Assembly: GCA_001643675.2 (NCBI GenBank)
Contig: LSRY02000004.1
Span: 1,302,001 to 1,366,000, forward strand
Source: Monocercomonoides exilis PA203
Taxonomy: Eukaryota; Protista; Preaxostyla
Direction: 5' to 3'
DNA length: 64,000 bases
Shown here in pieces: positions 24,877 through 53,792 of the stretch. The notes beneath the pieces are model-generated. The model was not told the DNA's origin and did not search any database. It saw nothing but the letters and a program-made list of their open reading frames with translations. Position numbers and translations under genes: made by a program. How positions within the stretch are numbered: the stretch's first letter is position 1; every line of letters begins with the position of its first letter.

Positions 24877-27800
24877 ATGATTTTTGCGTTAATATTCGGA
24901 ACGAACTATCTTGTCTATTTCTGTTCTTGCGAATTAATAAATGACAAAAATGGCTATTTTGAATTTGAAAAAAAAGAAGAACAATTTTACGGATTACTCA
25001 AATGCACAAATGTCGATTTTTCATTTTTCAATGATTTGAAATTTATTAAAGAAGCAAAAACATTAACTGAATTTCGACTAAATAATTCCACCTTTTGTAT
25101 GACAAATATCTGTTCAATGAAGTCAGTTTATAAATCCATCTTTCAAATTAATTTCAATTCTTTTTGCTGTTTATCATCTTGTGAAATAATTGTTTATCGT
25201 GAGTCGAATGTTCCAATAATCTGCAACGGGACCGTTTGCTTCGAGAATATTTCCTTAAAAACAACAAAAGACATGTTATGTCAAAGCGTTGTCTGGGCAA
25301 ATGAGAAGTCAAAACTCATAATAGAGAAGTCATTTTTTTCGGATTTGTATTTGACAAAAGAAACAAATTTTGTCCATTCACAAAGTTGTTTCAAAGAAAG
25401 CTTGAAAAACTGTATGTTTTTGAATGTCACTCGATCATATCCTGAACCTCGAAAATGTCAAAAAACAACAGGATCAATAATATTTACAGTACAAAACTGT
25501 TTTGTTGATGATTCGACAATTTTTAGAGATGGTGGAATTATGCATGGAGAACTACGACTAAACTGTTCAATAATCTTCAATACTTCTTTCATAAATAATA
25601 AATATAGCCAAAATATAGAAATAAGCAAAGAAATACACAAAGACTTAACAACAAACCAATCATTTTCATTTTGTGAATGGAGTAACTGCGATGCAAGTTG
25701 TGGAGGAGCAATCTTTATTTATGATAACGTTGATGCAGTAATTCTAATCGACAATTCAATTTTTACAAAATGTAATGCCTTGTCCACTCGAGGTGGAGGG
25801 ATTTATGCTGAAAATATCTCAGAGTGCATTGTTAATAATTCTGTATTTTTGGAATGTGTAGCATCAACGAAAAATTCTGATGGTGGCGGAGGTGGAGTTT
25901 GCTGCATGGAAATTAGAAATCAAGTTTTAGTTGAAAACTGTTTGTTTAAAGATGACTGGTCAGGAAATGATGGAGGAGGCATAGACATATGGTATTGCTC
26001 ATGCAGTAGGCAAGATCACTGCATAAAAGATTGCTTATTTAACAACTGCAGCGGTAACAATAATTCCAGCTCAAACGGTGGCGGGTGCGATGTATGGTTT
26101 CCACAAACGATTTCCGTATGCTGTTCTTGTAGTTTTTGTAATTGTTTCTCATCTGTTGGAGCAGGGGGTTACAGTGTAAATGCATCTTTATCAAACGATG
26201 TTATGCTTCTGAAATATTGCTTTTTCCATAATAACACCGCTTTGATTTCAGGTCATGATGTTGTGATGCATCTTGGAATAACGAATTGCATTGATCCAAC
26301 ATGCTATTCAACTCGTATAACATTAAATAGAGTAAGTACAAAATGGAATTCAATAGATGATAAAAGTGAATGGTTAATTAATTCTGAAAGAAAAACAAGA
26401 TATGTTTGTAGCTCAAAAACAGATGAAAATGCGAAAGACACATATTTTTGTGGATTGGATGAAATACATCCTTGCGAAACACTGAGCCATTGCATCAAGC
26501 AACTCGTTCCAGACTATGTGAATGATGTGATGGTGATGGTTGGAACTGTTGTTGAACGTGATGAAGTGAATGCTAAGTCAAGCACTTTCACGATTAGAGG
26601 AGCAGAATTGGAAAGATGCATTGTTGAAACTGAGCTGAACAGAGGTGATCTATCTCTTTTTTCAGTTGGTATTGGACAGCTGAATGTGAGAGATTTGAGT
26701 GTGATTCACAGATCATCATTGGAAAGCAACAGACAGTGCCAGCTGTTTGAGATAAGAAGTGCAGGGCTAATGAATGTTTCAAGAGTCAATATCCGCATGG
26801 ACGATACTCATAGTGAAAACACTTCCTTTGAATCTTCACTGGTTGTGATGAATGGCGGAAGACTGAAAATGGATTTTGTGGTGTGGTCAAAAACGATATT
26901 GACAGAAAGCGTTGTAAAAATATCAGGTTCAAGTGGAGCTGAAGCTGAAATTATGAACTGTTCTTTCTTGAATATCAAAAGAACAAGAGCTGGAGCATCT
27001 TTGGTCAGCTCGGAAGAGTGTTTCTATTCAATGAGGATGGAAGAATGCACAGTTGATGAATGTGGGAGCAAAACATCTGAATTTGGAGGAGGATTTCTGG
27101 TTGAAATCAAGGGAAATAATTATATGGAATTTAAAGGAGGAAGCATAAAAAATTGTTATTCATCCGAGGCAACAGGAAGGGGAGGAGGGATCGGGATGAT
27201 AATTGGAGAAGGGGATTCGGACTTTGAGATCTCATGTGCCTTTGAGGGAAACAAAGCAAAGTGGGGAAGTGATATTTTCATTGATTTTCCCAACTTGGAA
27301 TCAGCAGCAAGAAGTGGGAAGATCACTTCATTGACAGCATCAAATTCCACAATCAACAAAATTCGGGGTTTCGATAATGGGGATGAAACAATTCCAATTC
27401 CGCTATGTGTTTATCTGATTCCTTTGCCAAATGAGATTGCTGTGAGCAATGCTGATGCATTTGATTATTCTCGTTGTGGGTTTGCCGAGTTTCCCTGTCT
27501 GACTCTGAAGCATTCACTGGAAAGACAAGAAGATGAAAAGAAGATTGTTGTCGATGGGATGACAGAAGTGAAAAATGAGCTGGCATTTGACTCTTTCCAA
27601 CACACAATCAGAGGGAAAGATGAAAACAGTGGATGGAAGGTAAGTAATGATCCGAATGGAAGTGACGGAAGCATGATAACAGTCATTGCTATTGCAAATC
27701 TTAGTTCGCTAATTTTCTCCATTCCTTCAATTCTTCTAAATCACGAAACATTCTTCGCATCTTCCTCTCCATTATTTTCGATTGAGAGCTGCTCATTGAG

Positions 27801-30800: not shown

Positions 30801-33800
30801 AGATGTGTTTGTGAAGTGCACTGACCTTGACTCGCAGATAAGTGAATCACAGTTCCTGATAAACTTTGGGGAGCCATTTGCGAAGGAGCTGGCAATATGG
30901 GGATGTTCAGCAGACAATTATGAGGATGAAGAGGATTTGTTGGGAAGAGTGTATGTGTTCAGGAGTGAATTCATATTTGTGTCTTCGATTGCGGAGAACA
31001 GCAGCGACAGCAAGAATTGTGGGGAAATGAAGGGCACATGCTCATCGCTGAATGTTGGGATGAGCCACATTATTCCTTCAGACTATTCACAGCTGTATAT
31101 TTGGAATGAGACAGCTTTGAGAGATTCTTGTTCTGCTCAAAAAGTGACAATCAAATCGATGGAATCTTGGCTGAGCGCAAACATTTCTGTTTGTGGAATG
31201 GATATTGGGAATGAGAGCATTATTTCAACATCAGAATCTGTTCGATTTGAGAGAGTGCAGTTTGTCTTTGATGCGATGCAGAGTGTTGTCTGCTCGTGCC
31301 TGATGCTCCAATTGAATGGATCGCTCTTTCTGGATTCAGTCTCTTTTGTGGCAAATAGTGAGTCATCTGGAAATTCGATTGCCTTTCATGATTTTTCCAT
31401 TCTGATTGTTGAAGACGGTGCTGTTGAGGCAGAGAAGTGTAGCGCATGGGGGTTTGTGCTGTCAAAGCCTGCATTTTGGATACAGAAATCAGAAATCGTT
31501 GTTTTTGAAGATCTGACGGTTCATGAAATGCGTTTCACGGGATCGATGATCGAGTGTGCCCTTATCCAGAAAATAAGTGTTTCAAAGCTTGTGGCATCAA
31601 ACATCACTCTGCAAAGTGGATGTGTGATTTCAACTGATAATAGTCCTTCATTGGCTTTTATTTCGCTTCAACTCTCATCTTTTGAAAATATCAGCAGATC
31701 GACTTCTGGTTCTTGTATTGCAAGTGTGACTCGTTCCACCTCCACATTTGAAATGCGCAACTGCTCATGCAGAAAATGCAAATCAGGAATAAAAAGAGGA
31801 AGCCTAATGTCAGCAATTTCAGTGAAAAATCTGTTGATCAACTCGTGTCTGTTTGAGAAATCTCTATTTGAAAAAATCGATTTGAATAAATTCAGCAGTG
31901 AAATATGCAGATGGAATGGATCTCTTGTGGAGATTGCGAGCAGCACAGCAGCGATGAAAGACACCTCCTTTGCCAACTCGCCTGAGGGAGGCCTGTCTGT
32001 GTGTGGAGGGAGCACAACCATCGAGAAAGGAGAGTTTGCGAACAATAATCCATCAATCGAAGGATACCCATCAGCAAGAAGAAACATTGTGTGTGGAGAT
32101 GCAGGATCGCTGGATGTGTTGAGTTTGAAAGGCGGAGATGGGGTGCTGCCAAACACCTCGATGTGGATCCTGAATGAAGGGTGCACTGTGGGAGGGATGG
32201 CTGAAGAAAGAGAATCTGTTTTCTTTATTCCGCGACTGGATGGTGTGGAGGCTGAAGACGATGGAGGCGAGACAACATTGAAGTTCCACGGATCGCTTCT
32301 CTTGCCGTGCAACCTGTGGTTCCAGATGGCAACCACCGTTGGGTCAGCCTCGTCGATGGCAGCTCACCAGTTCGAGGCAGACGGATTTGCAGGTGAGGGC
32401 GAGGCTGTGGGGGTGCTGCCATCAGGCGCCATCCGCTCGGCTCCAGAAGAGGCAGAAGTGTCTGTGTGCATTCTGTTTGGAAGAATAGACTCTCCTTCAT
32501 CAACCGAATCGTTTGTTCTGAAGAACAGAAGTGAATCTGAAATAAAAGGAGATGGAAGAATTGTTGAGGGAGGAAAAGAAGGGAAATCATCCTCTTCAAC
32601 AGTTATTATAATTGTTTTGGTCGTGATTTTGTTGATTGTTCTTATTGCATCCATTCTTGTAACAATACGATGGAGAAAACAAAAAAGAAGGACAGAAGAG
32701 CTGGAGGTGATTGTGGAAGACACAGTGAAGAAGGACCCAAAAGCATTTGAGATGGTGACGATGGAGATGTCGCCAGAGGAGCAGTGGAGGAAAGCAGAGA
32801 GGGAAGCAGAGAAGAAGAATGAAGAGAGGATAAAGAAGAGAGTATATGCGAAAAGCTTGGGGCATTCCGAGTCATCGGAGCATTTGCTGAGTGAGAGTGG
32901 TTCGACAGAATATATTTTGGGAAGAGACTCAGACAAGATTCCTGAATGGATGCTGGAGAAGGTTGACGAAAAAGAAGAGGAGGAAACAAGAAAGCGAACA
33001 CCATCACCATCCATCTCATCCACTTCAACAACTGATTCAGATTCCACTTTTGTTCGGAGAGAGGATCTGTGCCCCACAACTTCATCCATGTCGAATCTGG
33101 TAGATGCAATGGCCTGCTCATCTCCTCATGAGAAGCTGATTGTAGATTTGAGGGATTCATTGTTCATGCTGCTTCATGGAAGGAATGAGAAAAAAGAGAT
33201 GGCAATTGGCACCTTTCAGGAGAGAGAATATACAGCTGTCCAAATCCTGTTCTGGGTGGCCAATCTTGCGCTCCACTCCTTTGATGAAATGGACAATCCA
33301 CTCTCTTCTCTTGCCAATCTGAGTCCTCACATTGTATTGTTCTCCGAGCACATGGTCATTTGCATTGCGATGCACTCCGACTTCTCTTCTGATGATTCGG
33401 ACTCATCATCCATCTCTTCATCAACTGTTGTGACATCAGCCAGTGATGATAATGACAGCGGTTCTCTGCCCTCATCAGCCTTTGAGGATGAGGACGATTA
33501 CAAAAAAAGAGTGTCTGAGGTGGAAGGCACCCGAGCTGTTGATCAACAAGAAGATGGGGGCAACAAAGGAAACTGTTGCCTTTTCAATTGGAATGATTCT
33601 GTGGGAGTGCTTGACGCTGAAGATCCCGTTTGGAGAGTATGAGGCAGAGGTGGCTGGACAGAAGATTGTGAATGGAGAGAGGCCAAAAATCGAAGCAATC
33701 CAAAAACAAACGCTGAAAGCAATCATAAAAGGATGCATCGCAGGCGAAGCACCAGAGAGATATTCCTTGTCTGCACTGAAGCGCGAATTCATCCAGCTCT

Positions 33801-33919
33801 TTCCGCCAGGAGCTGTGATGCTCACAATATCTGATGCAGTAGATTATGACGAACCATCTGCTCAAGATCAAACGCAATACAGGACTGGCCCAGAAAGCCA
33901 AAGCATTGTCAATCCCTGA
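24877..33919 (+). CDS. Giant single-pass receptor-like protein: Cys-rich beta-helix (Pmp/pectin-lyase-like) ectodomain, TM, TKL-like pseudokinase; frameshifted at 33502-33508 as given
   Basis: Intronless 2921-aa ORF with GG(A/G)I and FxxC/N repeats, five CGxxxxP/xCxS/T modules and TM VIIIVLVVILLIVLIASILVTI (~32602-32670). The remainder (LRWKAPE...FSIGMILWECLTLKIPF) lies in the +1 frame to 33919 and matches the paralog. Confidence 0.85.
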
Positions 33920-36900
33920 ATGGATACATACACATATTCCAGAAAGTTGTGCACTTCTTCTGATATCCTCACAGAATTTGCATCACCAACATGAACTATC
34001 GCAAAGGATGGTGCACGAAGCACGAAGCATGAATTACGAAGGATGTTGAAGGCATTTTATTTCTTGCAAGATTTCCGTTTATCCTCTTTTCGCAATTATG
34101 TATTCTTCTTCTTTTGTTTTTTTTAATATATTTTCATATCACCAGATTTTGTATTTGCCTTTTTCCGAAACACATAGTTCAGCATCGAATGGACTGCAAA
34201 TCTGCAAAATCCCAGATTATTTCTCTTTTTCATTTGCATTCAAAACTTTAAAAATGTTCATCAACTGATGCCGCAATACTGCCAATAGGAAGACGACTGC
34301 AATCATAAGAATAAATAATAAAGCAATATGTTTCATGCTATTACAGTACGCAGCGTCCAATGCAATTGTCTTTCCATCTCCATAAGAATGGCATGATGCA
34401 GAATACAAATCTCCATTGCTGTTCGTTCGCTTGTCTGCTCCTTTGATCTAATTGCTTCAGAATACTCGATAATGCGGTAGTAAGAAAAAAACTTTCGAGA
34501 TGGCCTCTTTGTGGAAGGCATTGCTATGCTTTCTCATCATCGAATTAAAAAAAGCTCAAATCACAAAGGGGCACCAAATAAAGAGAAGCATGACGTAGAA
34601 ATGCTCTGCACGGAAGAAGAAACAAAGTCCATTCTTTTTGCATTCGGCTGCACTTTCGAAACAATGGAGAAAAAAATTACTTGTTTCCATTTTGCATAAA
34701 TGTATCGCAACGCCCACTTCAGAAGCAAATCCATTGCCATTTAATAGATTTTCATGCCCTCACTCAAGAATCTCGAGAATTTCGCTTCCTTTTTCCCCCC
34801 CTCAACTCCACAAATGTTTCCATTAGCAGCTCTTATCCCTCACAATTCCTTCTTCTCCTATTGTCCATTCTTTTGCAAAATCTTCGGTTCTCTCCTATTC
34901 CTGCCACTTTAGCCACAAATAGCCTCGGTAATTCTTCTCTAAAAGACAAGACAAAACAAAACAAAATAAAGGCATCCTCCTTTTTTTGTTTTGTTTTGTT
35001 GACTGAAATGAAAGCAACCTGTCGAAGCATTGGCAAATGTCGAAAAGCCATCATTTGCGTGATAAAGGCACTAATATCTCTAATCCGCTTGGAAATAAAA
35101 AAGATGAAGATGAATCCGGAGCAAGTGACTCCTGGAAAACACCACCAGTAAACTTCGCATTATCTTTGCAAGTTTTTCATAGAAAACTGAAAAAAATAAC
35201 AATTTATACAATTAGAACGCTCAGATGCCAACGAAGATACAGAAAGCGAACCTGTAAATGATGACAATGAATAATTTTTGCTGATGCCCTTGACTTCGTG
35301 GCTTTAATGAAGCAATTCAAAGCAAAAGCTGTGCGCTCGATTGAGCTCTTATCAACGAAAAAGAAGATACCCAACCACGAGGCAGCCGTGGACACGAAAA
35401 AAACAAAGAAATGACATTGCTGGAAAATAGGTAATTCTTGTATATCCCTTGGGTGAATAATGAATTCCAAAATACCTTTCTAAGGCTGAAAATAAGAGAA
35501 AATAAGCTGCACATGGCATAAATGCCGATTCTGTGAACTGATGATGCTTCCCAACAAATTTAGTTCTGAGCACTGCAACAAGCATCTGGAGCAGATTTTG
35601 TTGATAAAACATCACAAATAAAAAGCCAGAACACGAATGGAAAATATGCGCACAAACCTCCTGAGCAAAAAATAATACAGTGACCAACACACACCAAGTC
35701 TTTGAATGGAACGAAAAATAAAAAAGGATAGACAAGAAGAAAATAAAATAAAAAAAAAAATAAAACGATAAAGAAAACGAATAACAACCGCAATAATAAC
35801 AAAAAATACCTTTTCAACAAAAAAATTGTTTGAAGCACGCCAAATGCAGTCAATTATCTTGCAGTGAATTCTGCTGGCACATCAAAGGATAAATAAAAAT
35901 CAAATAATAATTGCAAAGACGCAAAGAGCACGAGTTTTATTATTATCATGCAGATAAATAAATGCCTCCTTTTTTTCTTGATGTTTCTGCCAAAAACTCA
36001 TGCATTACGTTCCGCAAATATTCGTTGAACTTTTGCCCCTGCCAATGCAGATTGCATGAACAACGGATTCAATCCCGGAGCACGGCTGCAATTTTCGAGG
36101 CCTGGGGCTCTTGCCACAAATTGGAACCTCTTCCAGAACATCAAATTCGAAAAAAGAAAGGAAGGAAGGAAGGAAACATCCAATTTCTAATATGATCGCA
36201 AAAAGATGCATTTCGAACATATAGATCCGACACATTTCGTGCATTAGCTGCCTGCAAATTATCCGGCTCCACCATGTTCGTATTATCTTCCTCTGCTTCC
36301 ATCTTCGAAGCCTCCTTGAATTTTTGAGTCGGTCCATTCCGCTCCATCCCTGCCTTAAAGTCGCTCAAATCGCTTTTCAGATTCTGTCCATTCAATAAGA
36401 TCAAAAAAAAAATATGTTGCTGCATTCACGGCCTTGTCTTCTGCAGACACGCTGAGACACATCTCCATCATGGCCCCTGCCTCCCTGTTAAATCTGCTAT
36501 ATTTGCCATATCGCTTTGCTTTCATTTCATAAGTTTGACGTGGTGCTAAAAGTGGTTGCCCAAAAATAACTGCACGAAAAATGATGTTTTCAAGAATATA
36601 CAAGCTCCGTGCAGCCACGCTTCGCACAGCCCCAGCCTGCGCTCTTGCTCAGTAAAAATCAAGCGTTTTCATCTTGTCCCAATTCTTCGCTTCGTGTGCG
36701 TTCAAATCAGTTTGTGCTCTGACTGCTCTTTTGCCTCCTTGCTTCCTCAGCCGGCTGGCAGAGGGCAGCAAACCACGCAAACCTCGTGGGTGCCTGCTGT
36801 GAGACATTGCGTGCGCTCTACTCGCATTGCCAGACCCAGTGCTTCGCAAAAAAAAAGTGTTGAATCACAACAAAGCTATTCAAAATATCACTTGCCAACA

Positions 36901-36982
36901 TTTCTTTTCAATGATGGAGCCTCAAAAAATAAAATCATCAATAGATATTTTTTGTCTTCCATTAAAAAAATACACGCCGATG
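31906..36982 (+). repeat. Left arm of ~5.1 kb inverted repeat
   Basis: ORF-track translations mirror 37361-42433 (coordinate sums 74339/74340). The outer edge is at the CRWNGSLV codons. Confidence 0.95.
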
Positions 36983-37360
36983 CACAAGTCCAAAAACTTA
37001 TTTGTTGTAATCAGAATATTAACATATTTTTTGTTAAATATTTTAATTCAAAATGTTATTCTTTTGGAAATTTTTAAAAACACCATTAATATGAAATTCT
37101 CAATTTAGCATTGCTCTTTGAGGTTCTTGGCTTTAATAAAGGGGAAAGGATTTGACTTTTTTTTTTGAATGTTCAAACTTAAAAAACCAAAAAGTTTCAG
37201 CATAATTTTAATCACAAAATGCTTGAGAATATTTGAAAACTATCATCAAATGAAAGATATTCATTCGAACTTAAATAATTATTTGAAATATCAGAAAAGC
37301 AAAATCACAAAAACAATTTGCTCATATTTTGTTTCAAATTTGACTCATGTTCCATTCATT

Positions 37361-42433: not shown

Positions 42434-45400
42434 CAGCTCTTGTGGAGAGAAATTCCTTCTGCTGCTTATTTTATCTTCCACGATCGCTTCAAAATAGCAC
42501 TGATCAAACATCACATTGTTGCACAGTGACAGTTTGGCAAGAATCCCTCTTTTGAGCATGGAAGGCCATCCGCTCATCGAACAGTTTGCAAGGGTTAGAC
42601 GACCAACAGAGGCTGCGGATAGAGTTGTCGAGGAACTTGTAGAAGATGAAGAAAGGGTGTTGTTTGTGAATGTGGTGTGTGAAATGGCTGCATCTCTGCT
42701 GTTCTCGCAGGATATCACACTGCCTGCTGAGGATATGGAGGTGAATCTGGTGGAGGTGATGGCAACCGAACACGATGAGGATGCAATCACAACAGAAGAT
42801 TTGAGGGAGAGGGAGGAGAACAGGCAGCCATTCAGCACGCCATCCCCTTTGCTGAAACATAGAAGCGGAAACAGCGGAAGAACTGAATCAGACGAAAAGG
42901 AGCAGTTTGTCAGCTCGACAACACCCGAGCCTGGAGAGATGAAGGAGGAGTGGGAAGACGAAAACTGGTGTCCAAACACAAAGCACAGATTGGTGATGGC
43001 AACTGTGTTGAGTGTGGTGATCACAGCCTCGCTGCCTTGCGTTGCAAGCGAAGAGATTGAGATGGTGCTCACAGACTTGGATCGCGAGGCAAGCAGAAGG
43101 CTGTCCAGCGTCAGCTCGTCTTCGATGACCGAGGCACCTTCAACCACGAGGCGAGATTCGAAATCGGCAGTGACATGAGCAATGGCATAATCGAGCGAGA
43201 GGCAGGGCAGGAGATGTGTGCCGCACTGCCGCTCGTTCCTTCCTCTGCTCTCGGGGAGCGAGCAGGCAACAACGGTGTCAGCCTGGTAGATTGTGATGAA
43301 GTCCATCAGATTGGTGTCGGTGGTGTGATCTGTTGTGTCGATCCCATAAATCGCATTCTGCCTCACATACACCCCTTCCCGCAGATCGAACCTGAACTGT
43401 GTTTCGTTGATCTGTGCCGAGATGCTGTGGCACGAGACAAAGATGTCGTTCCCCACCTTTGCTGTGTTTCCTGTGAACGACACGCTCTGGAACAGGAGAT
43501 GAAGTGCTCCATTCCCCATGGAATCAACATAAAACGCCCCGCCCTTCCCTTCATCCGAGCAGCAGCAGCGCAGTATTGCCGACTTCACAACAGAAAAAGA
43601 GCCATCTCCGGTCAGCTTGACAAACACTGCGCCTCCTTTTTGGCTTTGCCCTGCCTTGCAGTCGCTGATTGTTGAGCTGTTCACATCAACCACAACCACA
43701 CCGCTTTCTGTGTTGCTGTCAATCACTGCTGCTCCGTTGTCTGTTCTGGTCACAGATGCTATTGCTGATGAAGTCACCGTTATTCTGCTCTTCTCATATG
43801 CATTCACTCCCTTTACTAATTCAATCACTTCCACAACTTCCAGAACACCTCCATCTGAAATATTCACAAACGAGCATGTGAAGTTGATGATCTCGCAAAC
43901 AGCCGAGCCCACAACAATCGCGCTTTTCGAGATGCTAGCCGACTCCACTGACACGTCCACAAGCGAAAGTTTCCCTTTCAGGCAAGCAACAAAACTGCAC
44001 CTGCTCTGCCGCATTCCACCCAGCCCTGCTTCTGTTCCAAACACACACTGCGCCAAACTCAGCACCCCGCCCTCGCACTGAACCAAAGCTGATGCAGAGT
44101 TGTTGAATGAAGACGAGATGATCAGGGAGACACATTTCAGCATCAGCTCATCTGCACATCGGAAGAATGGATCCATGGAATCTCCCGCCTTTTCTCCAAA
44201 AGAAAGTTTGGAGGTGGCCATCTCATCTTCCGCCAACAAGCTGGATTGGATGGTGAAGTTGGAGAGAGTGAAGGTGTTGGCAACTTCAGTGGATTTGGTG
44301 ATGGAGATGAGCTTTGGCGAGGCCTCGCTGCTGATCTGCTGCATCCCTTTCCAGAACGAGCAGCATGGATCATCTGCGCTTCCGCATCTCATCACATCTG
44401 TCCCAGCGTCTGATAGATGGATTGTTGCAGCCGAATACGGAACCAAATATCGGAACAAATCCCACAATTCATCTTCTCCCTCTTTCCCCACAAATGTGTT
44501 GCTGTCGCTCTTCATCGCCTCGAATGAGAAGGCAAATGTTGCCAAAGAGACTGACGAGTTCAAGTTCTCAGAAACAATAAACATGTTTCTGCCTTGCTGA
44601 GCATCGTTTGCTTCGAACGCCATGTTGCCTTCGAATCGGAAGGGTTTTGCTGCTGCAGACTTCGAGCAGTCGATATGCAAAAACCCTCCTCTGCCTCTTC
44701 CTGTGGAGCATTTGCACAGCTCAGCTCGGCAGCTCTTCATGCGCAGCAGGTCTGATCGCTCCAGACAGACAGACATTGCACCGCCTTCTGTGCCTGTGGG
44801 AGAGCAAATGTTGTGGAAGCAGCACTCCTCGAGCGTGGCATAAGACGAAAGTGCGAAGGGGCAGTTCACAAACACCAACGAAGAAACAGACACATTCAAC
44901 AGCTCAGCTGTTCCTCCTTTATTCGACAGCAGAACATATTCCAGCACAGAAGTGGCATCCGAATGGAACGAGGTTGAGTTGAAGGTGAGATATCCGTCAG
45001 ACGACGAAACAACAGAAGACTGTCCATTTGAGAAGAACGCAGGCAGATGGAACTGCACAGAACAAAACGAAAGCGAATTGTTCGAGCTGAAAATCGACTG
45101 GCTCGATCCGCCTGTTGTTTGAGAAATCGACAGTTTGGCAAATGCAGGTGAAGCAGCTGCTGCAGGCAATCCAATGCTGAGCTGAGAAAGGCCAATCTCA
45201 AAGCACTCATCAATTGTCACTTCATCCAGAATTTCAACAAAGCATGATTGAGAAACTTCAGATGCTTGCAAGTTGTTGATGCCCCGCCACAACGAGTGGC
45301 AAGGTGTTTCTGCCTTTCCACACCCAATAAAGTCGATTCCAGCCGATCCAACGCTTATCGTCGATGAAGAATATTTCACCAAAAAATACAGCAGATCTGC

Positions 45401-48400
45401 TGAAACGCTCACAAAATGTGTTTCGTCTCTTCCTTTCAGATCGACTTTTGTCTCTCCGTCTGCTCCAAAATACTCGAAATCAAACAGAGATGGAATGATT
45501 GACGCGTTCAAATCAGCGCTTCTCACAAACATGTCTTTCCCTTCAAATGCCTCATTTCTGCTGAATGTTAAATCAGAAAACAAAAAGACATTGACATTCT
45601 CCTTCAAATCGAGATAGATTCCTCCTCCTCTCCCATTAACCGCATTCACTCCACAAGACACAATTGATGTTTTGTTCATCACCAAAGATCCTTCTCCCTC
45701 CAGAACACAACAAAGAGCCTCTCCATCCCCTTCTGTCGAAGTGCATCCTTCGAATGTGCATGCCCCTGAGATTTCAACAGACTTCGGTCGAGTCATCTCC
45801 AGCATGTGTCCATTTGTCGTCTCGCAATTCTCAAATCCTGTATCCTTCAGCGTTATATCGCAATTCCCGCTTCCAGTTATCAATCCCTTTCGTGCATCAG
45901 AAGAGATTGAAGAAAAGCTGCATGCCTCCAACAGAAGCGATGCTCCATCAATCAAAACAACACCAGCTGCCTGAAATGGAATATTGCTGAAAGTGCAGGA
46001 GTCAAAGTGCACAACTCCGCCCACTCCTGAAACAATCCATTTCGAAGGGTTGGAATTGCTGCTGCTTCCTTGTTCAAATGTGCAATCCAGAAATGAGCAT
46101 TGACCAATGCTGACTTCCACAAGCGAACTCATTTCTGGTGAAGGATTGGGAGACGATGGAAGCACAAATCCCAGTCTGGAAAATGTGAGAGTGGTTGAGC
46201 GACTTCCTTCAACCAGCTCGAACTTTCCGCTGGTTCCAAATATCATTGCTTTTGTTGTGGCATTGCTTTGGATGGTGAGTGAGACTCTGTGCCTGTTCAC
46301 AACAGAATCGATGGGGGTGTTTCCTTCGAGCTGGATGATTGTGTGGGAAGAGTCCATTTTCTGGAAGCCCAGTTCCACTGAGGTGCATGGGTTCCGCTTC
46401 GATCCGCAGTTCTCAACAGCCGAGGCACCGCCATCCACAAACACAAACGAAGTCGGTGGAGGGAACAGATAATCGATCATTGTGGCACCTCCGTCTGCAG
46501 GCTCAGACAGACTGCGCACCCACAGGCGGTCAGGGGCATTGTCTTCAGAAGCTGACCCATTCCAATACATCAGAAGGATTGCTGCCCCTGGCTCTTCGCA
46601 GACAACATACGCATCCTTCCCGCGCAATGCTCCGTTGTTCTCGAAGGTGTTGTTCCTCATCGAGTAATCGAGATGGGAAGAGGCAAACGTGAGGAACAGC
46701 CCTCCTCCATACCCATCTCCGCTGGACACAATGCAGAACTCCACTTTGTTTCTCTCGAAACGGAATGTGCCCCCTTCTTCCACATCCATCAGCACACACC
46801 CTCCAATCGTTCTTGCCGAATAGCATCCACACAGCTTGAATGAGCAGTTCTCCACGCCCAACACCTCGCCAGCACCCAATTCACCCACAATCACTCCTCC
46901 ATCCCCATTTGTTCTGCTCAGATTCGAAAATGTCACATTCTTCACAAGACCATTTGCCAGTGAATAAATTGCAATGTGGCTGCTGTTAGCCATCGTAGAA
47001 TTTTCGATGCTGCTGTTCTCAATTCCCAATTTTTTCCCTCTCACAGCCAAAAGCAGCGCTCCTTCTCCTTCTCTGCTCAGCTTGGATGCTTCCATTCCCT
47101 CAATCGCACACTCAGCATCACTTCCATCAAGTGCAATAATCCCAGCATTTCCCATTGCAAAGTCCTTCATTTTGCATCCATTCAATTCCACTTTCCCATT
47201 TGTCACAAAGATGATCCTGTACTCAACAGCCGAGCTGCTGCTGTTCTGGAACTCGCATCTGTGAATGGTGAGCGTGGCTGACAAGCACAGAAACAGAGAA
47301 GTGCGTGAGGGCTCGTCGAATGATCCTGGCAGTCCAAACACAATTTCGCTGAACTTCACATTCACTGAAGAGCACAACAATCCAGCACCTTCTCCCATTC
47401 CATCACTCCTCACATCAATTATGCCTCCAATCTGCTCAACAGTCACTTCGGTTGGCTGTGTGTCAAAAGATATGGCATCCTTGAAGGAAAAGTCTGCTGT
47501 CAGCCTGATGGATGCGCCAGATGAATTGGATGCTGGAAAGCGCTTGGAGATCGCAAAGGGGATTGTTGCACAGGGGTATATCGAAACGCCGCACATCCGA
47601 TAGTCAAATCCAGTGTTTCCTCCCGCGATTGCAGGTGGCTCAAACGTCAGCAGAAACACAACCAAAGGAATGGCATACGAAACATTCCCATCTTCAAACC
47701 CACACAGCTTCCCAAACTCAGCTGTTGACTCTTTGTCGATATTGAACTTGAATGACTGATTGGTGACGATTTTGTCCAGGCTGTGTCCTTCAACAAACAC
47801 ATTGCTTCCTCCTCCCTCTGCTTCATTGCTTGCGCTGTCTCCATCTGTTCCAAAGGAAACAGCTGTGAGGACAAGATCAGCCAGCCAGTCTGCACACTTC
47901 AGAAATACTCCTCCCCCAAATCCACATTTTGGCAAGGTGCCTTTTGCACTGCACCTGGCAAATCTTGTGGCTGTGCCTTCCTTGCCAATCCGAACTTTGG
48001 CAGTGGAGCTTGTGCTGATATACACCCCTCCACCACATCCCATCACCGAAGAACAGCTGTCAACTGAGACATCGTTCAATTCCAGTGACTCGTTTTCACC
48101 AATGTCTGCCTTGATCACGCTTCCGTTCCCTTCGTTTTTGGTGATCCCTGAAAAAGTATTGTTTTCAGCAACCAGACTTTTGCCACGCTTGTCTTCCACA
48201 AACGAGCAGCATGAAAAGGCAGACTGGCTGATTGTTGTGTTGTGCATGCTCAATGTGCCGGCTGAGGAGTATGCGATGATTCCTGTCTCAACAGCAGATG
48301 TGACATTTGTCCATGTGCATAACTCAATTGCTCCACTCCCTTTGCTGCACACTTTCACCATCTCGGCTGACTGAAACCCGATTGAGTTCACTGTGAATCG

Positions 48401-51400
48401 GGTCATTGCAAACGAGCCTTCAGCAACAGTCAAAAACCCAAAAGCGCATTTTTCTTCACCTTGTTCAGCCAGTATTGAGCATTCCTCCAGATTGAGCATC
48501 GCATTTGTGCTGCACACAAGAAACACCGATGATTGAGGGCTGGGGATGGTTGGCTGCAGGCAAAACGCGAGATGTTTCCATGTTGATGCTTGCTCCATTC
48601 TTATCATCGCCTCTGCTGCTCCTGTCTGGGTGCCAATCATCCTCATCCTTGTTTCTGCCACTGTGCCTTCAAAGGTGATCTCGTTGGCACCTGAGAGGGT
48701 GATTGTCTCGCTGAGTGCATAGACTGGATGCACAATCAGTTCTCCTGACTCGTCTGTTCGCTGCGTCAGTGCAAAGGCAATCGTCTGGCACCCATAATCT
48801 GCGAATCCGCATGCAGACACATCGTTTCCTTCTGAAAGCACATGCACATCTGACTCACGAGGCAGCAGATAAAACACAAGAGGGATAGCAACACTCGGCC
48901 ATTGGGAATCGATTCCAGCACAGCTTTCAGCAGCAAATGGCGCATCTTGAAGGAAGAACTGGAAGGCAGCTGTGGTGATGCTGGATGCCAGATCGACAGA
49001 GGACACAAACAAATCATTGCCATGCTCAGCTGTGTTTGATGCAAAGATCAGGGTATTTGCGAGAAGATATCTGGTGTTGACTTCAGAGAAATCAATGAGA
49101 ACGGCGCCTCCCTTCCCTTTTGAGCCTGCACTTGGCTTTGGAGCCTGGCACGATGTGAATGCAGATGACTCGAGTGTGAGTGCTGATTGGCTGCTGATGT
49201 GAAGCCCAATGGCTCCACCTCCTTTGCCATTTTCAGTCACTGTGCATTTTGTGAATGTGCAGTTGCTTGCTGTGAACGAGCTCGCAAAGCCGCTTCTGGT
49301 GTTCAGAAACACACACGAACCGTCTCCTGCTGTTCTTTTGATCTCTTCAAAAGTGGTGTTCTTTGCCGTCAGCGAATATGTTCCTGAGGAGCTGGCAACA
49401 AATGCAGAGCTGGTGAGATTTGAGCTATGGAATGTGCTGCTTTTGATGGTTGTGGTGCCTGTCGAGTCAACAGATATCAGTCCATCGCTGCCAGTGGTCG
49501 TCATTCCATTTGCATCCAAAGCGTCGAAATCTGCAGAGGCGCTTCCGCTGATGGCAACAAACGGCGCATTGCCAAAACTCAGCTTCTGTGCAAGAGGAGC
49601 AGCAAAGCGGGTTACTAACAGTTTTCCACTTGTGATCTTCACAAGGCAATACGAAACAGAAGCACCCGAAGCAGCTGGCACAGCCGCGCAGTCAGTCATC
49701 GACAGCACATTGGCATTCGAGAGGATAAAGGCGTTCCTCCCATTCAAAGATGCCTCGAGCACAAACTTGATTCTGCTGAAACTTGTTTCCACAGAATTGA
49801 TCAGAAGCCCCTCACTCACTTTCGCTTGCGAGGAGCCAACATTGATGGGCATGCTGTCTTCTTCAGCATCAAACGCATACGATTGACTGTCGAGGAGTGT
49901 TTCTGTTCGGAAGGAGAAGGAAGGCAGAAGGCGAATATTTCTCTTTGTGTTTGCAAATCGCGCAGCTGAAGCGCCTTCCACGCTCTGGCACGGATAGTCG
50001 CTGTATCCGCAGAGGCGATAGTTGTTATCAGTGATCTGTCCAGACACATAAGCGGGAGAAGTGAAGTTCCTCAGAAACAGAGCAAGCGGGAAAATAACTG
50101 ACTCATCCCCATTTTCCATCCCGCTCAGCTCATCAAAATCTGTGATGCCAATCCCAATCACTGGATGAAAGCCAATTGTGTTTGTGTTTGCTGTTCTGAG
50201 CAGTTCTGCACTTTCAATAAAAACATTCTTCCCTTTCCAGCCGTTGCACCCAGAAAACTGAACTGATTTGAGCTGGAAGTCTCCAGCTCCTTCCCTAAGG
50301 CAAAGATAGATTGCCCCGCCTTTCCTCTTCTTCTGGCTGTCTGCAGGAACAGTGCATGTGTCGAACAGGCAGCCAGAATCCACCCCAACCTGTGCTGTGC
50401 TGTGTGCGTTCAGCTCCAGATACAGCGCTCCTCCATTTCCGTCGAAGCACTTGCAGTTCTCCAAAGAAACATTCGAAAGCACAAAGTTCTCTTCTGCCTG
50501 GACAGCCTTGCTGAATACTGAGCCATCGCCTGTCCTGCGGCTGACCATCGATATCTTCACATTGCTCAGCACAAGATGCGCCTGCTGCTCTGTTGCAAAC
50601 AACGATGTGCTCTCAAAAAGCACAGAAGATATCTCACAACTTTCGAGAGAAGCTTCACCCTTTGTCAGCAAAAAGAACGGTTTGTTGAATGCAGCTGAAG
50701 TTGAGTCAGCCTTCAATGAGCATTCATGCAGTGCAAGCACAGAATCCTCGCTGTTCTCAGCAAATAGGCATTTATCTGAGGAAGATGTCGAGCTGTGAAC
50801 AATCTGCATTCCGCGCATGTCCAACGATCCACCAAGAAGAGTGCAAAATGCGCTGCTTGATGGTATTGTGTGGATTGTTATGCTCGATGAAGAAGTGTTC
50901 TTTTCAATGACTATGTTCTGAAAAGCAAGTGAAATTGAGTCCTCTGCATATTTTCCAGAATAGAGTTTGACTGAAAGATGATATGAGTTTATCCACTGCT
51001 TGCATGAAAAGCCCAGTGTGCTGCATTCATTTGAAATATCACCACATCCCGCCACATCTCCAGACTCTCGCATTGGATCCACATGAATAACAGTTCCAGA
51101 TGGATTGGGAAGGAGAGAATTTCGTTCTTCTCCATTTGTGCAAGCACGGTATCCTTGTGTGCACATCCAAACTCTGTTTTGTTTGCTCAACGAAAAGCAA
51201 AATAGAATACAAGATGAGTCAATGAGATTATGATAATGCTCTGTAAAAACAATATCGTTTCCATTTGATGCTGAGTTGTTTTCAAAGAAACAGTAAGAAA
51301 ACATCGGTGCAGTTACAGAACCTTCATGATCCTTGCACACGAATATTGCCCCTCCGAAAGAGGCTGCAAAGTTCGAATCACACAATAATTCAGTAGCAGT

Positions 51401-52660
51401 CATTGAAAAAAAAGTTTGATATAACATCAATGCACCCGCTTCACCTCCCCTGCTTTCGCTTTGAATCATCCTTAAGCGCGAACAAATCACAGGAGATGTC
51501 GATCCATAAATAATTCCAACGCCTCGGAGACCAGCTTCGCATTGAGATGCATTAAGATCAGTAACACTCACAGAATACATGTTATTGACTGTTCTCATAA
51601 ATCCTTCTCGACCCACTGCAACACATTTTTCAACAGAACACCTTTGAATCAACAATGGCCCGACATCAGTTAAATGCAAAACATTTCCATATCCTTCTGG
51701 ATGTGTGTTGTTGCATCTGTCAAAGAAGCACTCTCTGATTGTGAATGATTTTGTTCCAGATGCATAGATTGTTCCCCCGTTAGACTGTTTACTTTCGACA
51801 TTGAATGTTGTCTGCTCGATCACAACATCTCCGTCGGAGCTGTCAAATACTCGTCTGTTGTGTTCGGTAACTGTGCAAGCAGAAAAGGATGTATTGCGAC
51901 AAACAAATGACGATAGTGGCCTGCCAATTATGAGCACAGAGCAGAATGGGTTCTCCACCCTTGAAACTTCGCACCCAGCAACGGAACTCTCTCTTGTCTT
52001 CAGGAAAAATTGTTTGTTAACGGTGTTGGGACTGCGATGGCTAATGTTTCGAAAGGCGCATTCCATCATGAAAAAATTGTCAATGTTTCCCGAAGCAGCA
52101 AGTGGATAAACTGTTTGAACAGCAAGAGAAGAAAACGCAGAAGAATGCATGCGGAGTGAGCTTTCATTGTGCAATTCTGCAATGCTATTTCGAATGATAT
52201 TTTGTTTTCCAAAATTGGAGATGGAGATGTTGGACAGTTCAAGCTCGCTGGATATCGAACAAAATGGTGCAGTACTCCAATTGGACAAAATCAACATGCA
52301 ACTGTGAACAGTGCACTCCGATCCTTGCACAATGGAAAATAAAGAATTATCTCCCTGTTGAAGAAGAATTGTTTGTGACGCATCCAATGAAGAATTAATT
52401 GTGCTGATGGATGATGAAAGAACGCTTGAAGCCTCATGGGCGTTGGGATTGTTTGCGAAAGAACGAGACTGAATTGATGAAAATTTTAGATGTTCTCTTT
52501 CTTCGAATTTTTCGCTTGGTTCATGTTTTTTTATGAAGGCAATACAAGAATGGTGGGGAACTAAACATTCGGATGTGGTATTTGATGGTGTGTTGAAACT
52601 TGATATTGGAGCAAGCGCAAATTGAAATTGGAAGAATGTGAAATAAAGAATGCATATCAT
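40421..52660 (-). CDS. Giant single-pass receptor-like protein (4079 aa): signal peptide, Cys-rich beta-helix ectodomain with 8 modules, TM, TKL-like pseudokinase
   Basis: Intronless ORF with hydrophobic N-terminus MICILYFTFFQFQFALA, repeated GGAIY/GGGVY and FxxN/C motifs, eight CGxxxxxCx(S/T) modules, and TM at ~41670-41737. C-lobe motifs LRWKAPE and FSIGMILWE are present; HRD and DFG are absent. Confidence 0.9.
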   Translation of the reverse strand: MICILYFTFFQFQFALAPISSFNTPSNTTSECLVPHHSCIAFIKKHEPSEKFEEREHLKFSSIQSRSFANNPNAHEASSVLSSSISTINSSLDASQTILLQQGDNSLFSIVQGSECTVHSCMLILSNWSTAPFCSISSELELSNISISNFGKQNIIRNSIAELHNESSLRMHSSAFSSLAVQTVYPLAASGNIDNFFMMECAFRNISHRSPNTVNKQFFLKTRESSVAGCEVSRVENPFCSVLIIGRPLSSFVCRNTSFSACTVTEHNRRVFDSSDGDVVIEQTTFNVESKQSNGGTIYASGTKSFTIRECFFDRCNNTHPEGYGNVLHLTDVGPLLIQRCSVEKCVAVGREGFMRTVNNMYSVSVTDLNASQCEAGLRGVGIIYGSTSPVICSRLRMIQSESRGGEAGALMLYQTFFSMTATELLCDSNFAASFGGAIFVCKDHEGSVTAPMFSYCFFENNSASNGNDIVFTEHYHNLIDSSCILFCFSLSKQNRVWMCTQGYRACTNGEERNSLLPNPSGTVIHVDPMRESGDVAGCGDISNECSTLGFSCKQWINSYHLSVKLYSGKYAEDSISLAFQNIVIEKNTSSSSITIHTIPSSSAFCTLLGGSLDMRGMQIVHSSTSSSDKCLFAENSEDSVLALHECSLKADSTSAAFNKPFFLLTKGEASLESCEISSVLFESTSLFATEQQAHLVLSNVKISMVSRRTGDGSVFSKAVQAEENFVLSNVSLENCKCFDGNGGALYLELNAHSTAQVGVDSGCLFDTCTVPADSQKKRKGGAIYLCLREGAGDFQLKSVQFSGCNGWKGKNVFIESAELLRTANTNTIGFHPVIGIGITDFDELSGMENGDESVIFPLALFLRNFTSPAYVSGQITDNNYRLCGYSDYPCQSVEGASAARFANTKRNIRLLPSFSFRTETLLDSQSYAFDAEEDSMPINVGSSQAKVSEGLLINSVETSFSRIKFVLEASLNGRNAFILSNANVLSMTDCAAVPAASGASVSYCLVKITSGKLLVTRFAAPLAQKLSFGNAPFVAISGSASADFDALDANGMTTTGSDGLISVDSTGTTTIKSSTFHSSNLTSSAFVASSSGTYSLTAKNTTFEEIKRTAGDGSCVFLNTRSGFASSFTASNCTFTKCTVTENGKGGGAIGLHISSQSALTLESSAFTSCQAPKPSAGSKGKGGAVLIDFSEVNTRYLLANTLIFASNTAEHGNDLFVSSVDLASSITTAAFQFFLQDAPFAAESCAGIDSQWPSVAIPLVFYLLPRESDVHVLSEGNDVSACGFADYGCQTIAFALTQRTDESGELIVHPVYALSETITLSGANEITFEGTVAETRMRMIGTQTGAAEAMIRMEQASTWKHLAFCLQPTIPSPQSSVFLVCSTNAMLNLEECSILAEQGEEKCAFGFLTVAEGSFAMTRFTVNSIGFQSAEMVKVCSKGSGAIELCTWTNVTSAVETGIIAYSSAGTLSMHNTTISQSAFSCCSFVEDKRGKSLVAENNTFSGITKNEGNGSVIKADIGENESLELNDVSVDSCSSVMGCGGGVYISTSSTAKVRIGKEGTATRFARCSAKGTLPKCGFGGGVFLKCADWLADLVLTAVSFGTDGDSASNEAEGGGSNVFVEGHSLDKIVTNQSFKFNIDKESTAEFGKLCGFEDGNVSYAIPLVVFLLTFEPPAIAGGNTGFDYRMCGVSIYPCATIPFAISKRFPASNSSGASIRLTADFSFKDAISFDTQPTEVTVEQIGGIIDVRSDGMGEGAGLLCSSVNVKFSEIVFGLPGSFDEPSRTSLFLCLSATLTIHRCEFQNSSSSAVEYRIIFVTNGKVELNGCKMKDFAMGNAGIIALDGSDAECAIEGMEASKLSREGEGALLLAVRGKKLGIENSSIENSTMANSSHIAIYSLANGLVKNVTFSNLSRTNGDGGVIVGELGAGEVLGVENCSFKLCGCYSARTIGGCVLMDVEEGGTFRFERNKVEFCIVSSGDGYGGGLFLTFASSHLDYSMRNNTFENNGALRGKDAYVVCEEPGAAILLMYWNGSASEDNAPDRLWVRSLSEPADGGATMIDYLFPPPTSFVFVDGGASAVENCGSKRNPCTSVELGFQKMDSSHTIIQLEGNTPIDSVVNRHRVSLTIQSNATTKAMIFGTSGKFELVEGSRSTTLTFSRLGFVLPSSPNPSPEMSSLVEVSIGQCSFLDCTFEQGSSSNSNPSKWIVSGVGGVVHFDSCTFSNIPFQAAGVVLIDGASLLLEACSFSSISSDARKGLITGSGNCDITLKDTGFENCETTNGHMLEMTRPKSVEISGACTFEGCTSTEGDGEALCCVLEGEGSLVMNKTSIVSCGVNAVNGRGGGIYLDLKENVNVFLFSDLTFSRNEAFEGKDMFVRSADLNASIIPSLFDFEYFGADGETKVDLKGRDETHFVSVSADLLYFLVKYSSSTISVGSAGIDFIGCGKAETPCHSLWRGINNLQASEVSQSCFVEILDEVTIDECFEIGLSQLSIGLPAAAASPAFAKLSISQTTGGSSQSIFSSNNSLSFCSVQFHLPAFFSNGQSSVVSSSDGYLTFNSTSFHSDATSVLEYVLLSNKGGTAELLNVSVSSLVFVNCPFALSSYATLEECCFHNICSPTGTEGGAMSVCLERSDLLRMKSCRAELCKCSTGRGRGGFLHIDCSKSAAAKPFRFEGNMAFEANDAQQGRNMFIVSENLNSSVSLATFAFSFEAMKSDSNTFVGKEGEDELWDLFRYLVPYSAATIHLSDAGTDVMRCGSADDPCCSFWKGMQQISSEASPKLISITKSTEVANTFTLSNFTIQSSLLAEDEMATSKLSFGEKAGDSMDPFFRCADELMLKCVSLIISSSFNNSASALVQCEGGVLSLAQCVFGTEAGLGGMRQSRCSFVACLKGKLSLVDVSVESASISKSAIVVGSAVCEIINFTCSFVNISDGGVLEVVEVIELVKGVNAYEKSRITVTSSAIASVTRTDNGAAVIDSNTESGVVVVDVNSSTISDCKAGQSQKGGAVFVKLTGDGSFSVVKSAILRCCCSDEGKGGAFYVDSMGNGALHLLFQSVSFTGNTAKVGNDIFVSCHSISAQINETQFRFDLREGVYVRQNAIYGIDTTDHTTDTNLMDFITIYQADTVVACSLPESRGRNERQCGTHLLPCLSLDYAIAHVTADFESRLVVEGASVIEDELTLDSLLLASRSKSVSTISISSLATQGSEAVITTLNTVAITNLCFVFGHQFSSSHSSFISPGSGVVELTNCSFSSDSVLPLFPLLCFSKGDGVLNGCLFSSLSLKSSVVIASSSCSVAITSTRFTSISSAGSVISCENSRDAAISHTTFTNNTLSSSSTSSSTTLSAASVGRLTLANCSMSGWPSMLKRGILAKLSLCNNVMFDQCYFEAIVEDKISSRRNFSPQELCRWNGSLVEIASSTAAMKDTSFANSPEGGLSVCGGSATIEKGEFANNNPSIEGYPSARRNIVCGDAGSLDVMSLKGGDGVLPNTSMWILNEGCTVGGMAEERNSVFFIPQLDGVEAEDDGGETTLKFHGSLLLPCNLWFQMATTVGSASSMAAHQFEADGFAGEGEAVGVLPSGAIRSAPEEAEVSVCILFGRIDSPSSTESFVLKNRSESEIKGDGRIVEGGKEGKSSSSTVIIIVLVVILLIVLIASILVTIRWRKQKRRTEELEVIVEDTVKKDPKAFEMVTMEMSPEEQWRKAEREAEKKNEERIKKRVYAKSLGHSESSEHLLSESGSTEYILGRDSDKIPEWMLEKVDEKEEEETRKRTPSPSISSTSTTDSDSTFVRREDLCPTTSSMSNLVDAMACSSPHEKLIVDLRDSLFMLLHGRNEKKEMAIGTFQEREYTAVQILFWVANLALHSFDEMDNPLSSLANLSPHIVLFSEHMVICIAMHSDFSSDDSDSSSISSSTVVTSASDDNDSGSLPSSAFEDEDDYKKECLRWKAPELLINKKMGATKETVAFSIGMILWECLTLKIPFGEYEAEVAGQKIVNGERPKIEAIQKQTLKAIIKGCIAGEAPERYSLSALKREFIQLFPPGAVMLTISDAVDYDEPSAQDQTQYRTGPESQSIVNP

Positions 52661-53728: not shown

Positions 53729-53792
<64 letters not shown>
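53128..53792. repeat. Fold-back: inverted arms 53128-53300 and 53594-53792, ~290 bp spacer; outer ends poly(T)-(GTTT)n and (AAAC)n-poly(A)
   Basis: ATCTTTAACTCAAAGGATATGAAAC...CATCGTTTTTATCAAAAAA is the reverse complement of TTTTTTGATAAAAACGATG...CCTTTGAGTTAAAGAT. A 60-nt A run lies at 53733-53792. Confidence 0.9.

Follow-up and report, generated by a model that had tools for sequence, protein, structure and literature searches.

How do two copies of a sequence that face each other on one chromosome remain identical? In the palindromes of mammalian sex chromosomes, such as P1-P8 of the human Y chromosome and the X-linked palindromes, the arms are maintained by arm-to-arm gene conversion (PMC8600007, PMC8327919). 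Inverted pairs of variant-specific surface protein (VSP) genes have been reported in Giardia, with 13 tail-to-tail and 7 head-to-head pairs in G. lamblia WB (bioRxiv 10.1101/2022.03.07.483299) and 5 tail-to-tail and 2 head-to-head pairs in G. muris (PMC7641422). Here, we describe a palindrome in the genome of Monocercomonoides exilis PA203, the two arms of which are formed by the 3′ ends of two convergent giant genes, gene A and gene B, together with the DNA downstream of them. The sequence analysed (the window) consists of 64,000 nucleotides, positions 1,302,001 to 1,366,000 of contig LSRY02000004.1 in assembly GCA_001643675.2 (contig 36 below). We refer to the palindrome of the window as P1, whereas P2, P3 and the contig-6 palindrome are located elsewhere in the genome. 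We consider it probable, from comparisons among these sequences, that P1 is one of many partial-gene palindromes in a family of giant receptor-like (pseudo)kinases, and that its arms are kept uniform by conversion from arm to arm.

The closest biological parallel to P1 is provided by the inverted VSP gene pairs of Giardia. Giardia is likewise a metamonad, and its VSPs are likewise a large family of type-I surface proteins with variable ectodomains and a conserved C-terminus, in which inverted identical pairs occur and segmental gene conversion has been deduced. However, the Giardia pairs are described as duplicated along the whole gene, whereas the gene pairs of P1 and of the contig-6 palindrome, in both of which the two ectodomains (hereafter, heads) can be read, share only the tail and the downstream DNA. 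Moreover, the VSPs are rich in CXXC motifs and end in a CRGKA tail, in contrast to the beta-helix and kinase-like tail of the M. exilis proteins, and the two families are unrelated.

With the sex-chromosome palindromes, P1 shares inverted arms of more than 99% identity, a unique spacer and genes that belong to an amplified family, and the classical argument for conversion, namely that the identity of the arms lies far above what the divergence between homologous palindromes would suggest, applies to both (PMC8600007). The differences lie in scale and content. The sex-chromosome palindromes measure from 10 kb to 1.4 Mb, whereas the arms in M. exilis measure 2-5 kb, lie on ordinary chromosome-scale protist contigs, carry only the 3′ constant module of genes that differ outside it, and occur at least 26 times in one family.

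Conserved blocks that lend homology to conversion are also found in the C-terminal and 3′ regions of trypanosome VSG genes and in exon 2 of the Plasmodium var genes, and the ends of conversion tracts pile up at the edges of these blocks. The layout of a variable head on a constant tail is common to these families and to that of M. exilis. In contrast, switching has been demonstrated for VSG and var, which possess expression sites and silent archives, whereas in M. exilis, known here from assembled sequence, it is the conserved tail that is copied. A fixed boundary shared by all cassettes, of the kind seen in VSG, vlsE and pilE, was not found in the M. exilis family.

An earlier note, made from the sequence of the window, had proposed the locus as a candidate for an undescribed kind of system. 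We do not follow it in this, because arm-to-arm conversion in palindromes and the inverted VSP pairs of Giardia are both known. The novelty lies in arms that are restricted to the constant module, so that a single palindrome is shared by two different genes, and in the many recurrences of this arrangement in one family.

Results and Discussion

Structure of palindrome P1

Genes A and B are intronless and lie tail to tail, as the earlier note had described, and P1 spans about 10.5 kb in total. The features of the locus, in window coordinates, are as follows.

24877-33642, plus strand: gene A, an uninterrupted open reading frame (ORF) of 2921 amino acids (aa) encoding a giant type-I membrane protein
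40421-52660, minus strand: gene B, an uninterrupted ORF of 4079 aa encoding a giant type-I membrane protein with an intact tail
31906-36967, plus strand: left arm of P1, comprising the last 2.0 kb of gene A (stalk, transmembrane segment and cytoplasmic domain) and 3.05 kb of downstream DNA
36968-37372, no strand: spacer of P1, 405 bp, AT-rich
37373-42433, minus strand: right arm of P1, the mirror of the left arm, including the last 2.0 kb of gene B
31906-31929, plus strand: CRWNGSLV codons of gene A, with which both the arm (at its outer edge) and the tail module conserved throughout the family begin
42410-42433, minus strand: CRWNGSLV codons of gene B; in the structural model, they end a low-confidence linker that separates the beta-helix from the beta-rich domain after it
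about 32590-32682, plus strand: position in gene A that mirrors the transmembrane helix of gene B
41657-41749, minus strand: transmembrane helix of gene B, from residues 429-459 of the AlphaFold model and the sequence
33496-33502, plus strand: homopolymer of seven A (A7) in gene A, which is A6 in gene B
33443-33919, plus strand: out-of-frame rest of the gene A tail, an ORF with the kinase-like C-lobe, identical to the C-terminus of gene B
40553-40846, minus strand: kinase-like C-lobe of gene B (residues 3939-4036), matching the profile PF07714

The arms are 5,062 nt long and 99.6% identical (BLAST alignment of 5,077 nt), a match that exceeds chance and that no other repeat of the window approaches. 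The outer edge of P1 is the first base of the Cys codon in CRWNGSLV. Outward of this edge, the proteins of genes A and B are only 22% identical over 500 aa, and their DNA is about 50% identical, which is the random level. The spacer shrinks from 405 to 378 bp if a 17-nt extension of 88% complementarity is counted as part of the arm. These values bear out the earlier description of near-identical arms of about 5.1 kb beginning at the CRWNGSLV codons, of a spacer of about 380 bp, and of ectodomains that are dissimilar upstream of the junction.

A base-by-base comparison of the arms revealed 11 substitutions, all of them at 31986-32259, that is, in the outer 354 bp. The core that follows (32260-36939, 4.68 kb) contains no substitution, and the next difference appears only from position 36940. 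The sole difference between the arms that is not a substitution is the one extra A in the homopolymer of the left arm. Gene B and all of the eight other paralogs compared have A6 here, not A7, and the extra A shifts the frame of gene A, with the result that about 135 aa carrying the kinase-like C-lobe are lost from the ORF. Gene A thus consists of a signal-peptide-like N-terminus, an ectodomain of beta-helix repeats, the conserved stalk, the transmembrane segment and a cytoplasmic tail cut by a +1 frameshift. Both ORFs do stay open across the junction, as had been claimed; in this assembly, the tail of gene A is frameshifted. Because the assembly is based on Nanopore reads, the A7 run may be either a real mutation or a consensus error that short-read polishing left uncorrected inside a perfect repeat. 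For annotation, frameshifts inside such arms call for a check at the level of reads before a gene is labelled a pseudogene, as in the case of gene A.

Which of the two genes did the arm sequence belong to? Our comparisons of paralogs covered loci L001-L040 and the window. The proximal head and the tail of gene A, and about 3-4 kb of DNA downstream of it, are collinear with the paralogs L002 and L003 at about 91% identity. Gene B, in contrast, has its nearest head relative in L005, the downstream DNA of which is unrelated to the arm of P1, and we therefore regard the arm sequence as native to the lineage of gene A. The head of gene B is 93-97% identical to the gene MONOS_7234, the downstream DNA of which is unrelated to the arm. 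This gene, which matches gene B at that identity over about 4000 aa, is located on the plus strand of contig 36 at about 1289222-1301400, where it ends about 600 nt before the start of the window; it is inverted relative to gene B and 41 kb away from it. Gene B and MONOS_7234 form a dispersed 12-kb inverted duplication that encloses P1, with unrelated genes (a WD40 protein and a protein kinase) between them.

The N-terminal 1200 aa of gene A have no better match among the paralogs than one of 54% identity, which suggests that the head of gene A is itself a mosaic. For gene B, we considered a simple mosaic of two parents, L005-like up to a breakpoint and A-like beyond it. This was ruled out, because at most of the 11 sites that differ between the arms, gene B carries alleles absent from both gene A and L005; the outer 354 bp must have had a more complicated history.

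We found no recognisable gene in the 3.05-kb downstream part of the arm or in the spacer (six ORFs scanned, with 0 significant Pfam matches), and no tandem or dispersed repeat in this DNA besides an A-rich low-complexity patch at 35711-35808. A miniature inverted-repeat transposable element (MITE) or other hairpin element centring P1 was also considered and rejected on three grounds. First, the folding z-score of the spacer is -0.78, no better than that of shuffled sequences, and thus indicates no hairpin at the centre of P1. Second, the internal inverted repeats of the spacer are weak ones only. Third, copies of the spacer occur at just two places in the M. exilis genome, P1 and P2, the copy in P2 being 87% identical.

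A diverged sister palindrome

Genome-wide searches covered 82,301,135 bases on 101 contigs, and three further palindromes were compared with P1.

contig 36, 1553337-1557851 and 1558226-1562740, inverted: P2, about 220 kb from P1, found with the downstream half-arm and the spacer as the query
contig 36, 1238724-1242572 and 1246743-1250591, inverted: P3, also found with this query, with 3.85-kb arms that are 99.4% identical and a centre that differs from that of P1
contig 6, 726393-732873, inverted: the contig-6 palindrome, with 3.2-kb arms and a centre of about 70 bp

P2 is collinear with positions 32668-41668 of the window at 91.4% identity over 9 kb, spacer included, the difference between the two palindromes amounting to 7-13%, and both junctions of arm and spacer are at homologous positions in P1 and P2. 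Since arms, spacer and junctions are shared, the palindrome must predate the split of P1 and P2. Within each palindrome, however, the arms are far more alike than the two palindromes are to each other: their identity is 99.6-100% in P1 and 99.6% in P2 (4.5 kb compared), compared with about 91% between P1 and P2. An old palindrome with nearly identical arms suggests that the identity has been kept up by copying from arm to arm, and the earlier proposal that gene conversion homogenises the arms is well in line with these values.

The strongest alternative is that one very recent inverted duplication placed the tail of gene A and its downstream DNA onto gene B, in which case the arms would be identical because they are young, and no continuing conversion would be needed. 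The 4.68 kb without substitutions and the nativeness of the arm in the gene A lineage would both be expected of such an event. We nevertheless regard it as unlikely, for two reasons. First, P2 is the same palindrome with homologous junctions and spacer at only about 91% identity to P1, so that the structure is much older than the identity of its arms implies. Second, the arms of P2, P3 and the contig-6 palindrome are 98.8-99.6% identical, which would require several independent and very recent events.

In the contig-6 palindrome, the arms differ almost only by the lengths of homopolymers, while the heads cannot be aligned and the flanking DNA is unrelated. One arm of P3 is a headless tail, L007 (contig 36, 1238718-1240625, plus strand), which has an ORF of 644 aa and one in-frame TGA, and in which homology to the family begins about 101 nt past the position of CRWNGSLV. 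L007 may show a freshly made partial-gene palindrome before, or without, the acquisition of a head.

Extent of the family and recurrence of convergent pairs

All of the best 120 of 383 significant matches in the protein database are MONOS_ proteins of M. exilis, mostly annotated as 'uncharacterized' and in some cases with PF07714. The largest gene family of M. exilis is that of the protein tyrosine kinases of the tyrosine kinase-like (TKL) group, with 332 members, which overlaps with 'unclassified repeats' (PMC6759080, PMC8767320). Genes A and B belong to this family. Neither paper refers, in connection with the kinase family, to palindromes, inverted pairs, gene conversion or giant beta-helix ectodomains, and our literature search returned no report of palindromes in Monocercomonoides. 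The genes that the papers describe are the same, but we find 865 genomic matches to a degenerate 24-nt pattern that represents the invariant QILFWVAN block of the tail, compared with 0 for the reversed control, and the kinase match is confined to the C-lobe. The family is therefore much larger than annotated, with about 865 tails against 332 kinases.

Our census of pairs was partial, comprising the first 100 of the 865 motif matches in contig order and four variant-specific lists. The first 100 matches contain eight convergent pairs within 12 kb, spaced 3.2-8.6 kb apart. In every one of these eight, the two 24-mers are identical, wobble bases included, for which the chance estimated from the variant frequencies is about 1 in 10 per pair. 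Altogether, the partial census yielded at least 26 convergent pairs within 12 kb, P1, P2 and P3 among them, so that tail-to-tail pairs are frequent in the family; about 15% of the sampled members lie in small palindromes. Tandem neighbours are rare among the tail copies.

Some of the spacings between convergent tails recur almost exactly (3153, 3156 and 3168 nt on contig 18; 7211 and 7201 nt on contig 7), which suggests that the palindromic units themselves have been duplicated. The lists also contain about nine divergent (head-to-head) pairs of the same variant that are 9-22 kb apart, which may be whole-gene inverted duplications. Examples from the variant lists are the following.

contig 10, 987275 and 1007005, opposite strands: divergent pair
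contig 10, 1103384 and 1120761, opposite strands: divergent pair
contig 10, 1290695 and 1308187, opposite strands: divergent pair

Conflicting histories of heads and tails

Three distant clades are seen in the head tree, one uniting gene A with L002 and L003, one gene B with L005, and one L004 with L006. The tail tree places all seven genes of contig 36 in a single clade and all five of contig 58 in a second one. Approximately unbiased (AU) tests confirmed the incongruence that a comparison of head and tail phylogenies had been expected to reveal: a clade of A and B was rejected by the head data (p = 8e-32), and a clade of A, L002 and L003 was rejected by the tail data (p = 2e-7). The conflict rests on these two tests, since a clade of B and L005 was not significantly rejected by the tail data (p = 0.12). 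On these sequence comparisons, the histories of heads and tails are in conflict, the heads appearing as deep lineages and the tails clustering by chromosome region.

The divergence at third codon positions provides a second view of the tails. Among recent duplicates (the contig-36 paralogs L001-L008), it amounts to 14-32% over the cytoplasmic domain (tail nt +751 to +1590), whereas the head shows 4-13%, the stalk 2-10% and the downstream DNA, where it can be aligned, 5-7%. The value for the cytoplasmic domain is thus two to five times that of the head, the stalk or the alignable downstream DNA. The identity profiles between paralogs are patchy and mosaic. The simplest reading is that the high divergence reflects patches imported from many other tails, although a local mutation bias may be an alternative source of it.

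Protein architecture

An AlphaFold model was obtained for gene B from -200 to +260 aa around CRWNGSLV (pLDDT 76.7). In this model, residues 1-183 form regular triplets of short strands at a pLDDT of around 90; the beta-helix extends to residue 183, a low-confidence linker follows at residues 187-202, and CRWNGSLV, at residues 201-208, opens a new beta-rich domain. The best Foldseek matches are parallel beta-helix tailspikes and the adhesin PfbA (E values of 2e-6 to 1e-3), with TM-scores that are low because the model contains several domains, and the Pfam domain PF13229 is precomputed for a few members of the family. The ectodomain is accordingly modelled as a right-handed parallel beta-helix.

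On the cytoplasmic side, the Pfam match of gene B to PF07714 covers only positions 161-257 of the 258 of the domain (E = 4.6e-7), and in the Protein Data Bank (PDB), TKL kinases such as CTR1 match only the C-lobe, from the APE motif onward (E = 3e-4). The stretch in which the catalytic loop is expected reads LANLSPHI and, by eye, lacks the HRD aspartate. The glycine loop, VAIK lysine, HRD and DFG that make up a full catalytic domain were not all found in the gene B tail, and the sequence suggests that the cytoplasmic tail is probably a pseudokinase, or dead kinase. It is the most conserved part of the protein: family-wide conservation rises from 0.2-0.4 before CRWNGSLV through 0.45-0.65 in the stalk to 0.85-0.95 in the cytoplasmic domain.

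A proposed model of concerted tails under separate heads

How might this arrangement have arisen? We propose that an old inverted duplication set the constant 3′ module, consisting of a membrane-proximal domain, the transmembrane segment and a degenerate TKL kinase domain, together with about 3 kb of downstream DNA, in mirror image around a 0.4-kb spacer, and that each arm came to run outward into a different head. Recurrent intrachromosomal gene conversion between the arms would then keep the two identical, as the comparison with P2 indicates. The homogenised stretch would halt where the genes stop aligning, at the linker that connects the variable beta-helix head to the conserved tail; we infer that loss of homology is the cause. 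Beyond the single palindrome, the conflict between the trees and the mosaic identity profiles indicate that the tails within a chromosome region swap patches by ectopic gene conversion, which would leave the tails concerted by region and the heads separate. Ectopic conversion, with hundreds of other tails as donors, would act most readily on the most conserved part of the gene.

In M. exilis, non-homologous end joining (NHEJ) has been reported missing, while the homologous-recombination pathway is complete (PMC6759080). Reading our observations together with this report, we suppose that the loss of the one and the completeness of the other would favour repair outcomes of this kind. The outcome, a uniform signalling or anchoring tail under many heads, would be incidental to repair in a gene family that is very large and repeat-like.

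M. exilis is the model of a eukaryote without mitochondria, and the annotation of its largest gene family still goes no further than 'uncharacterized' or 'tyrosine kinase'. We now read this family as one of giant surface proteins with a beta-helix and, in the tail, a kinase domain that is probably dead; it has about 865 tails, which would evolve in concert by region, and its heads would represent old lineages. The layout of the family would also account for the classification of nearly half of the assembly as 'repeat'. In addition, the family may serve as a natural system, replicated many times, in which to gauge how far conversion tracts reach at the boundary of a domain; the organism is one for which the absence of end joining has been reported.

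Could the tail-to-tail palindromes also be functional? RNA interference (RNAi) has been proposed as a control of VSP expression in Giardia. By analogy, read-through across the spacer might produce an RNA hairpin with a stem of up to 5 kb, in which the cytoplasmic-domain sequence conserved throughout the family would be contained, and small RNAs from this hairpin would silence most of the approximately 865 members in trans; if so, the receptor heads could be expressed in a restricted or mutually exclusive manner. The existence of an RNAi pathway in M. exilis is plausible, since at least four loci with a Piwi (Argonaute) domain score above the Pfam cut-off (contigs 28, 47 at two places, and 8). 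It would also be compatible with this idea that the downstream DNA of paralogous palindromes has diverged by 5-7%, against 14-32% at the synonymous sites of the adjoining tail, but this contrast is explained equally well by ectopic conversion that inflates the coding divergence. We rate the chances of a silencing function as slim.

The CRWNGSLV switch

The earlier note had read the locus as a dedicated system of receptor diversification, resembling programmed antigenic variation, in which different ectodomains are recombined onto one signalling tail with CRWNGSLV as the exchange point. Part of this is supported by our data. Whenever contig-36 genes of different head type (three or four types) are paired, nt +1 or -5 of the CRWNGSLV codons marks the rise to 92-98% identity, so that a sharp switch recurs at the same codon. 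The conflict of the head and tail trees, the existence of the headless tail copy L007, and the very large size of the family with its variable heads would also fit.

However, the exchange point does not hold outside contig 36. In other clusters and palindromes, the identity switches at +49, +85 to +100, +101, +135, +151, +172, +289 and +319 nt, and CRWNGSLV is therefore no fixed recombination site. In the contig-36 alignment, no conserved DNA signal stands out at the switch beyond the codons of the conserved protein motif. We conclude that the 'exchange point' is the first conserved block after the domain linker, at which the homology between heads ends. Furthermore, no expression site or archive of heads was seen at the P1 locus, L007 being the only headless copy, and no recombinase was found in the ORFs scanned in the arms and spacer. 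The part that is copied is the constant one and not the variable one. Because it is the constant tail that becomes uniform, the pattern points to concerted evolution rather than diversification. With neither a layout of silent cassettes and an expression site nor a recombination signal or dedicated enzyme found, we regard a diversification system as very improbable.

Points against recurrent conversion

Several points weigh against recurrent arm-to-arm conversion as the explanation of P1. Gene conversion is deduced here from the comparison of sequences, and the structure of P1 and the identity of its arms are known from the assembled sequence alone, which also speaks for an assembly artefact. 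The ten rounds of short-read polishing applied to the assembly (PMC8767320) could have over-homogenised arms that were merely near-identical. The DNA compared for P2 does not extend to its right-hand outer edge. The exact switch at one codon in three head types could reflect a few ancestral head swaps that were inherited, instead of repeated conversions. Finally, the centre of P1 contains no hairpin element that would account for the origin of the palindrome.

The most improbable of the explanations is that the palindrome, or its perfection, is an artefact of Nanopore/Canu assembly and Pilon polishing, created by a chimeric fold-back read or by the joining of loci through a shared repeat: the short reads used in polishing the long-read assembly ten times cannot be placed uniquely in the arms (PMC8767320), and the single indel between the arms of P1, like nearly all differences between the contig-6 arms, lies in a homopolymer, but the unique 405-bp spacer is unlike the product of fold-back reads and recurs in the diverged P2 (91% identity), the 11 substitutions in the outer 354 bp are real, the arms run into long and different ORFs within a 2.3-Mb contig, the 26 or more convergent pairs are distributed over many contigs, and 12.9 Gb of reads with an N50 of 8.9 kb for an 82.3-Mb genome (PMC8767320; about 150x by arithmetic) suffice to span 10.5 kb.

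Other features of the window

Upstream of gene B, about 470 nt from its start codon, the window contains an inverted repeat of 173 nt (53128-53300 and 53594-53766) that is 96% complementary, with 293 nt between its halves; no copy of this repeat was found upstream of gene A. At the other end of the window, two large adjoining ORFs are present on the minus strand at 350-7189 (2279 aa) and 7245-9296 (683 aa). We considered the ORFs at 350-9296 as a third member of the family and rejected this assignment, as they have no tail motif and no Pfam match. The two are possibly one gene split by a stop.

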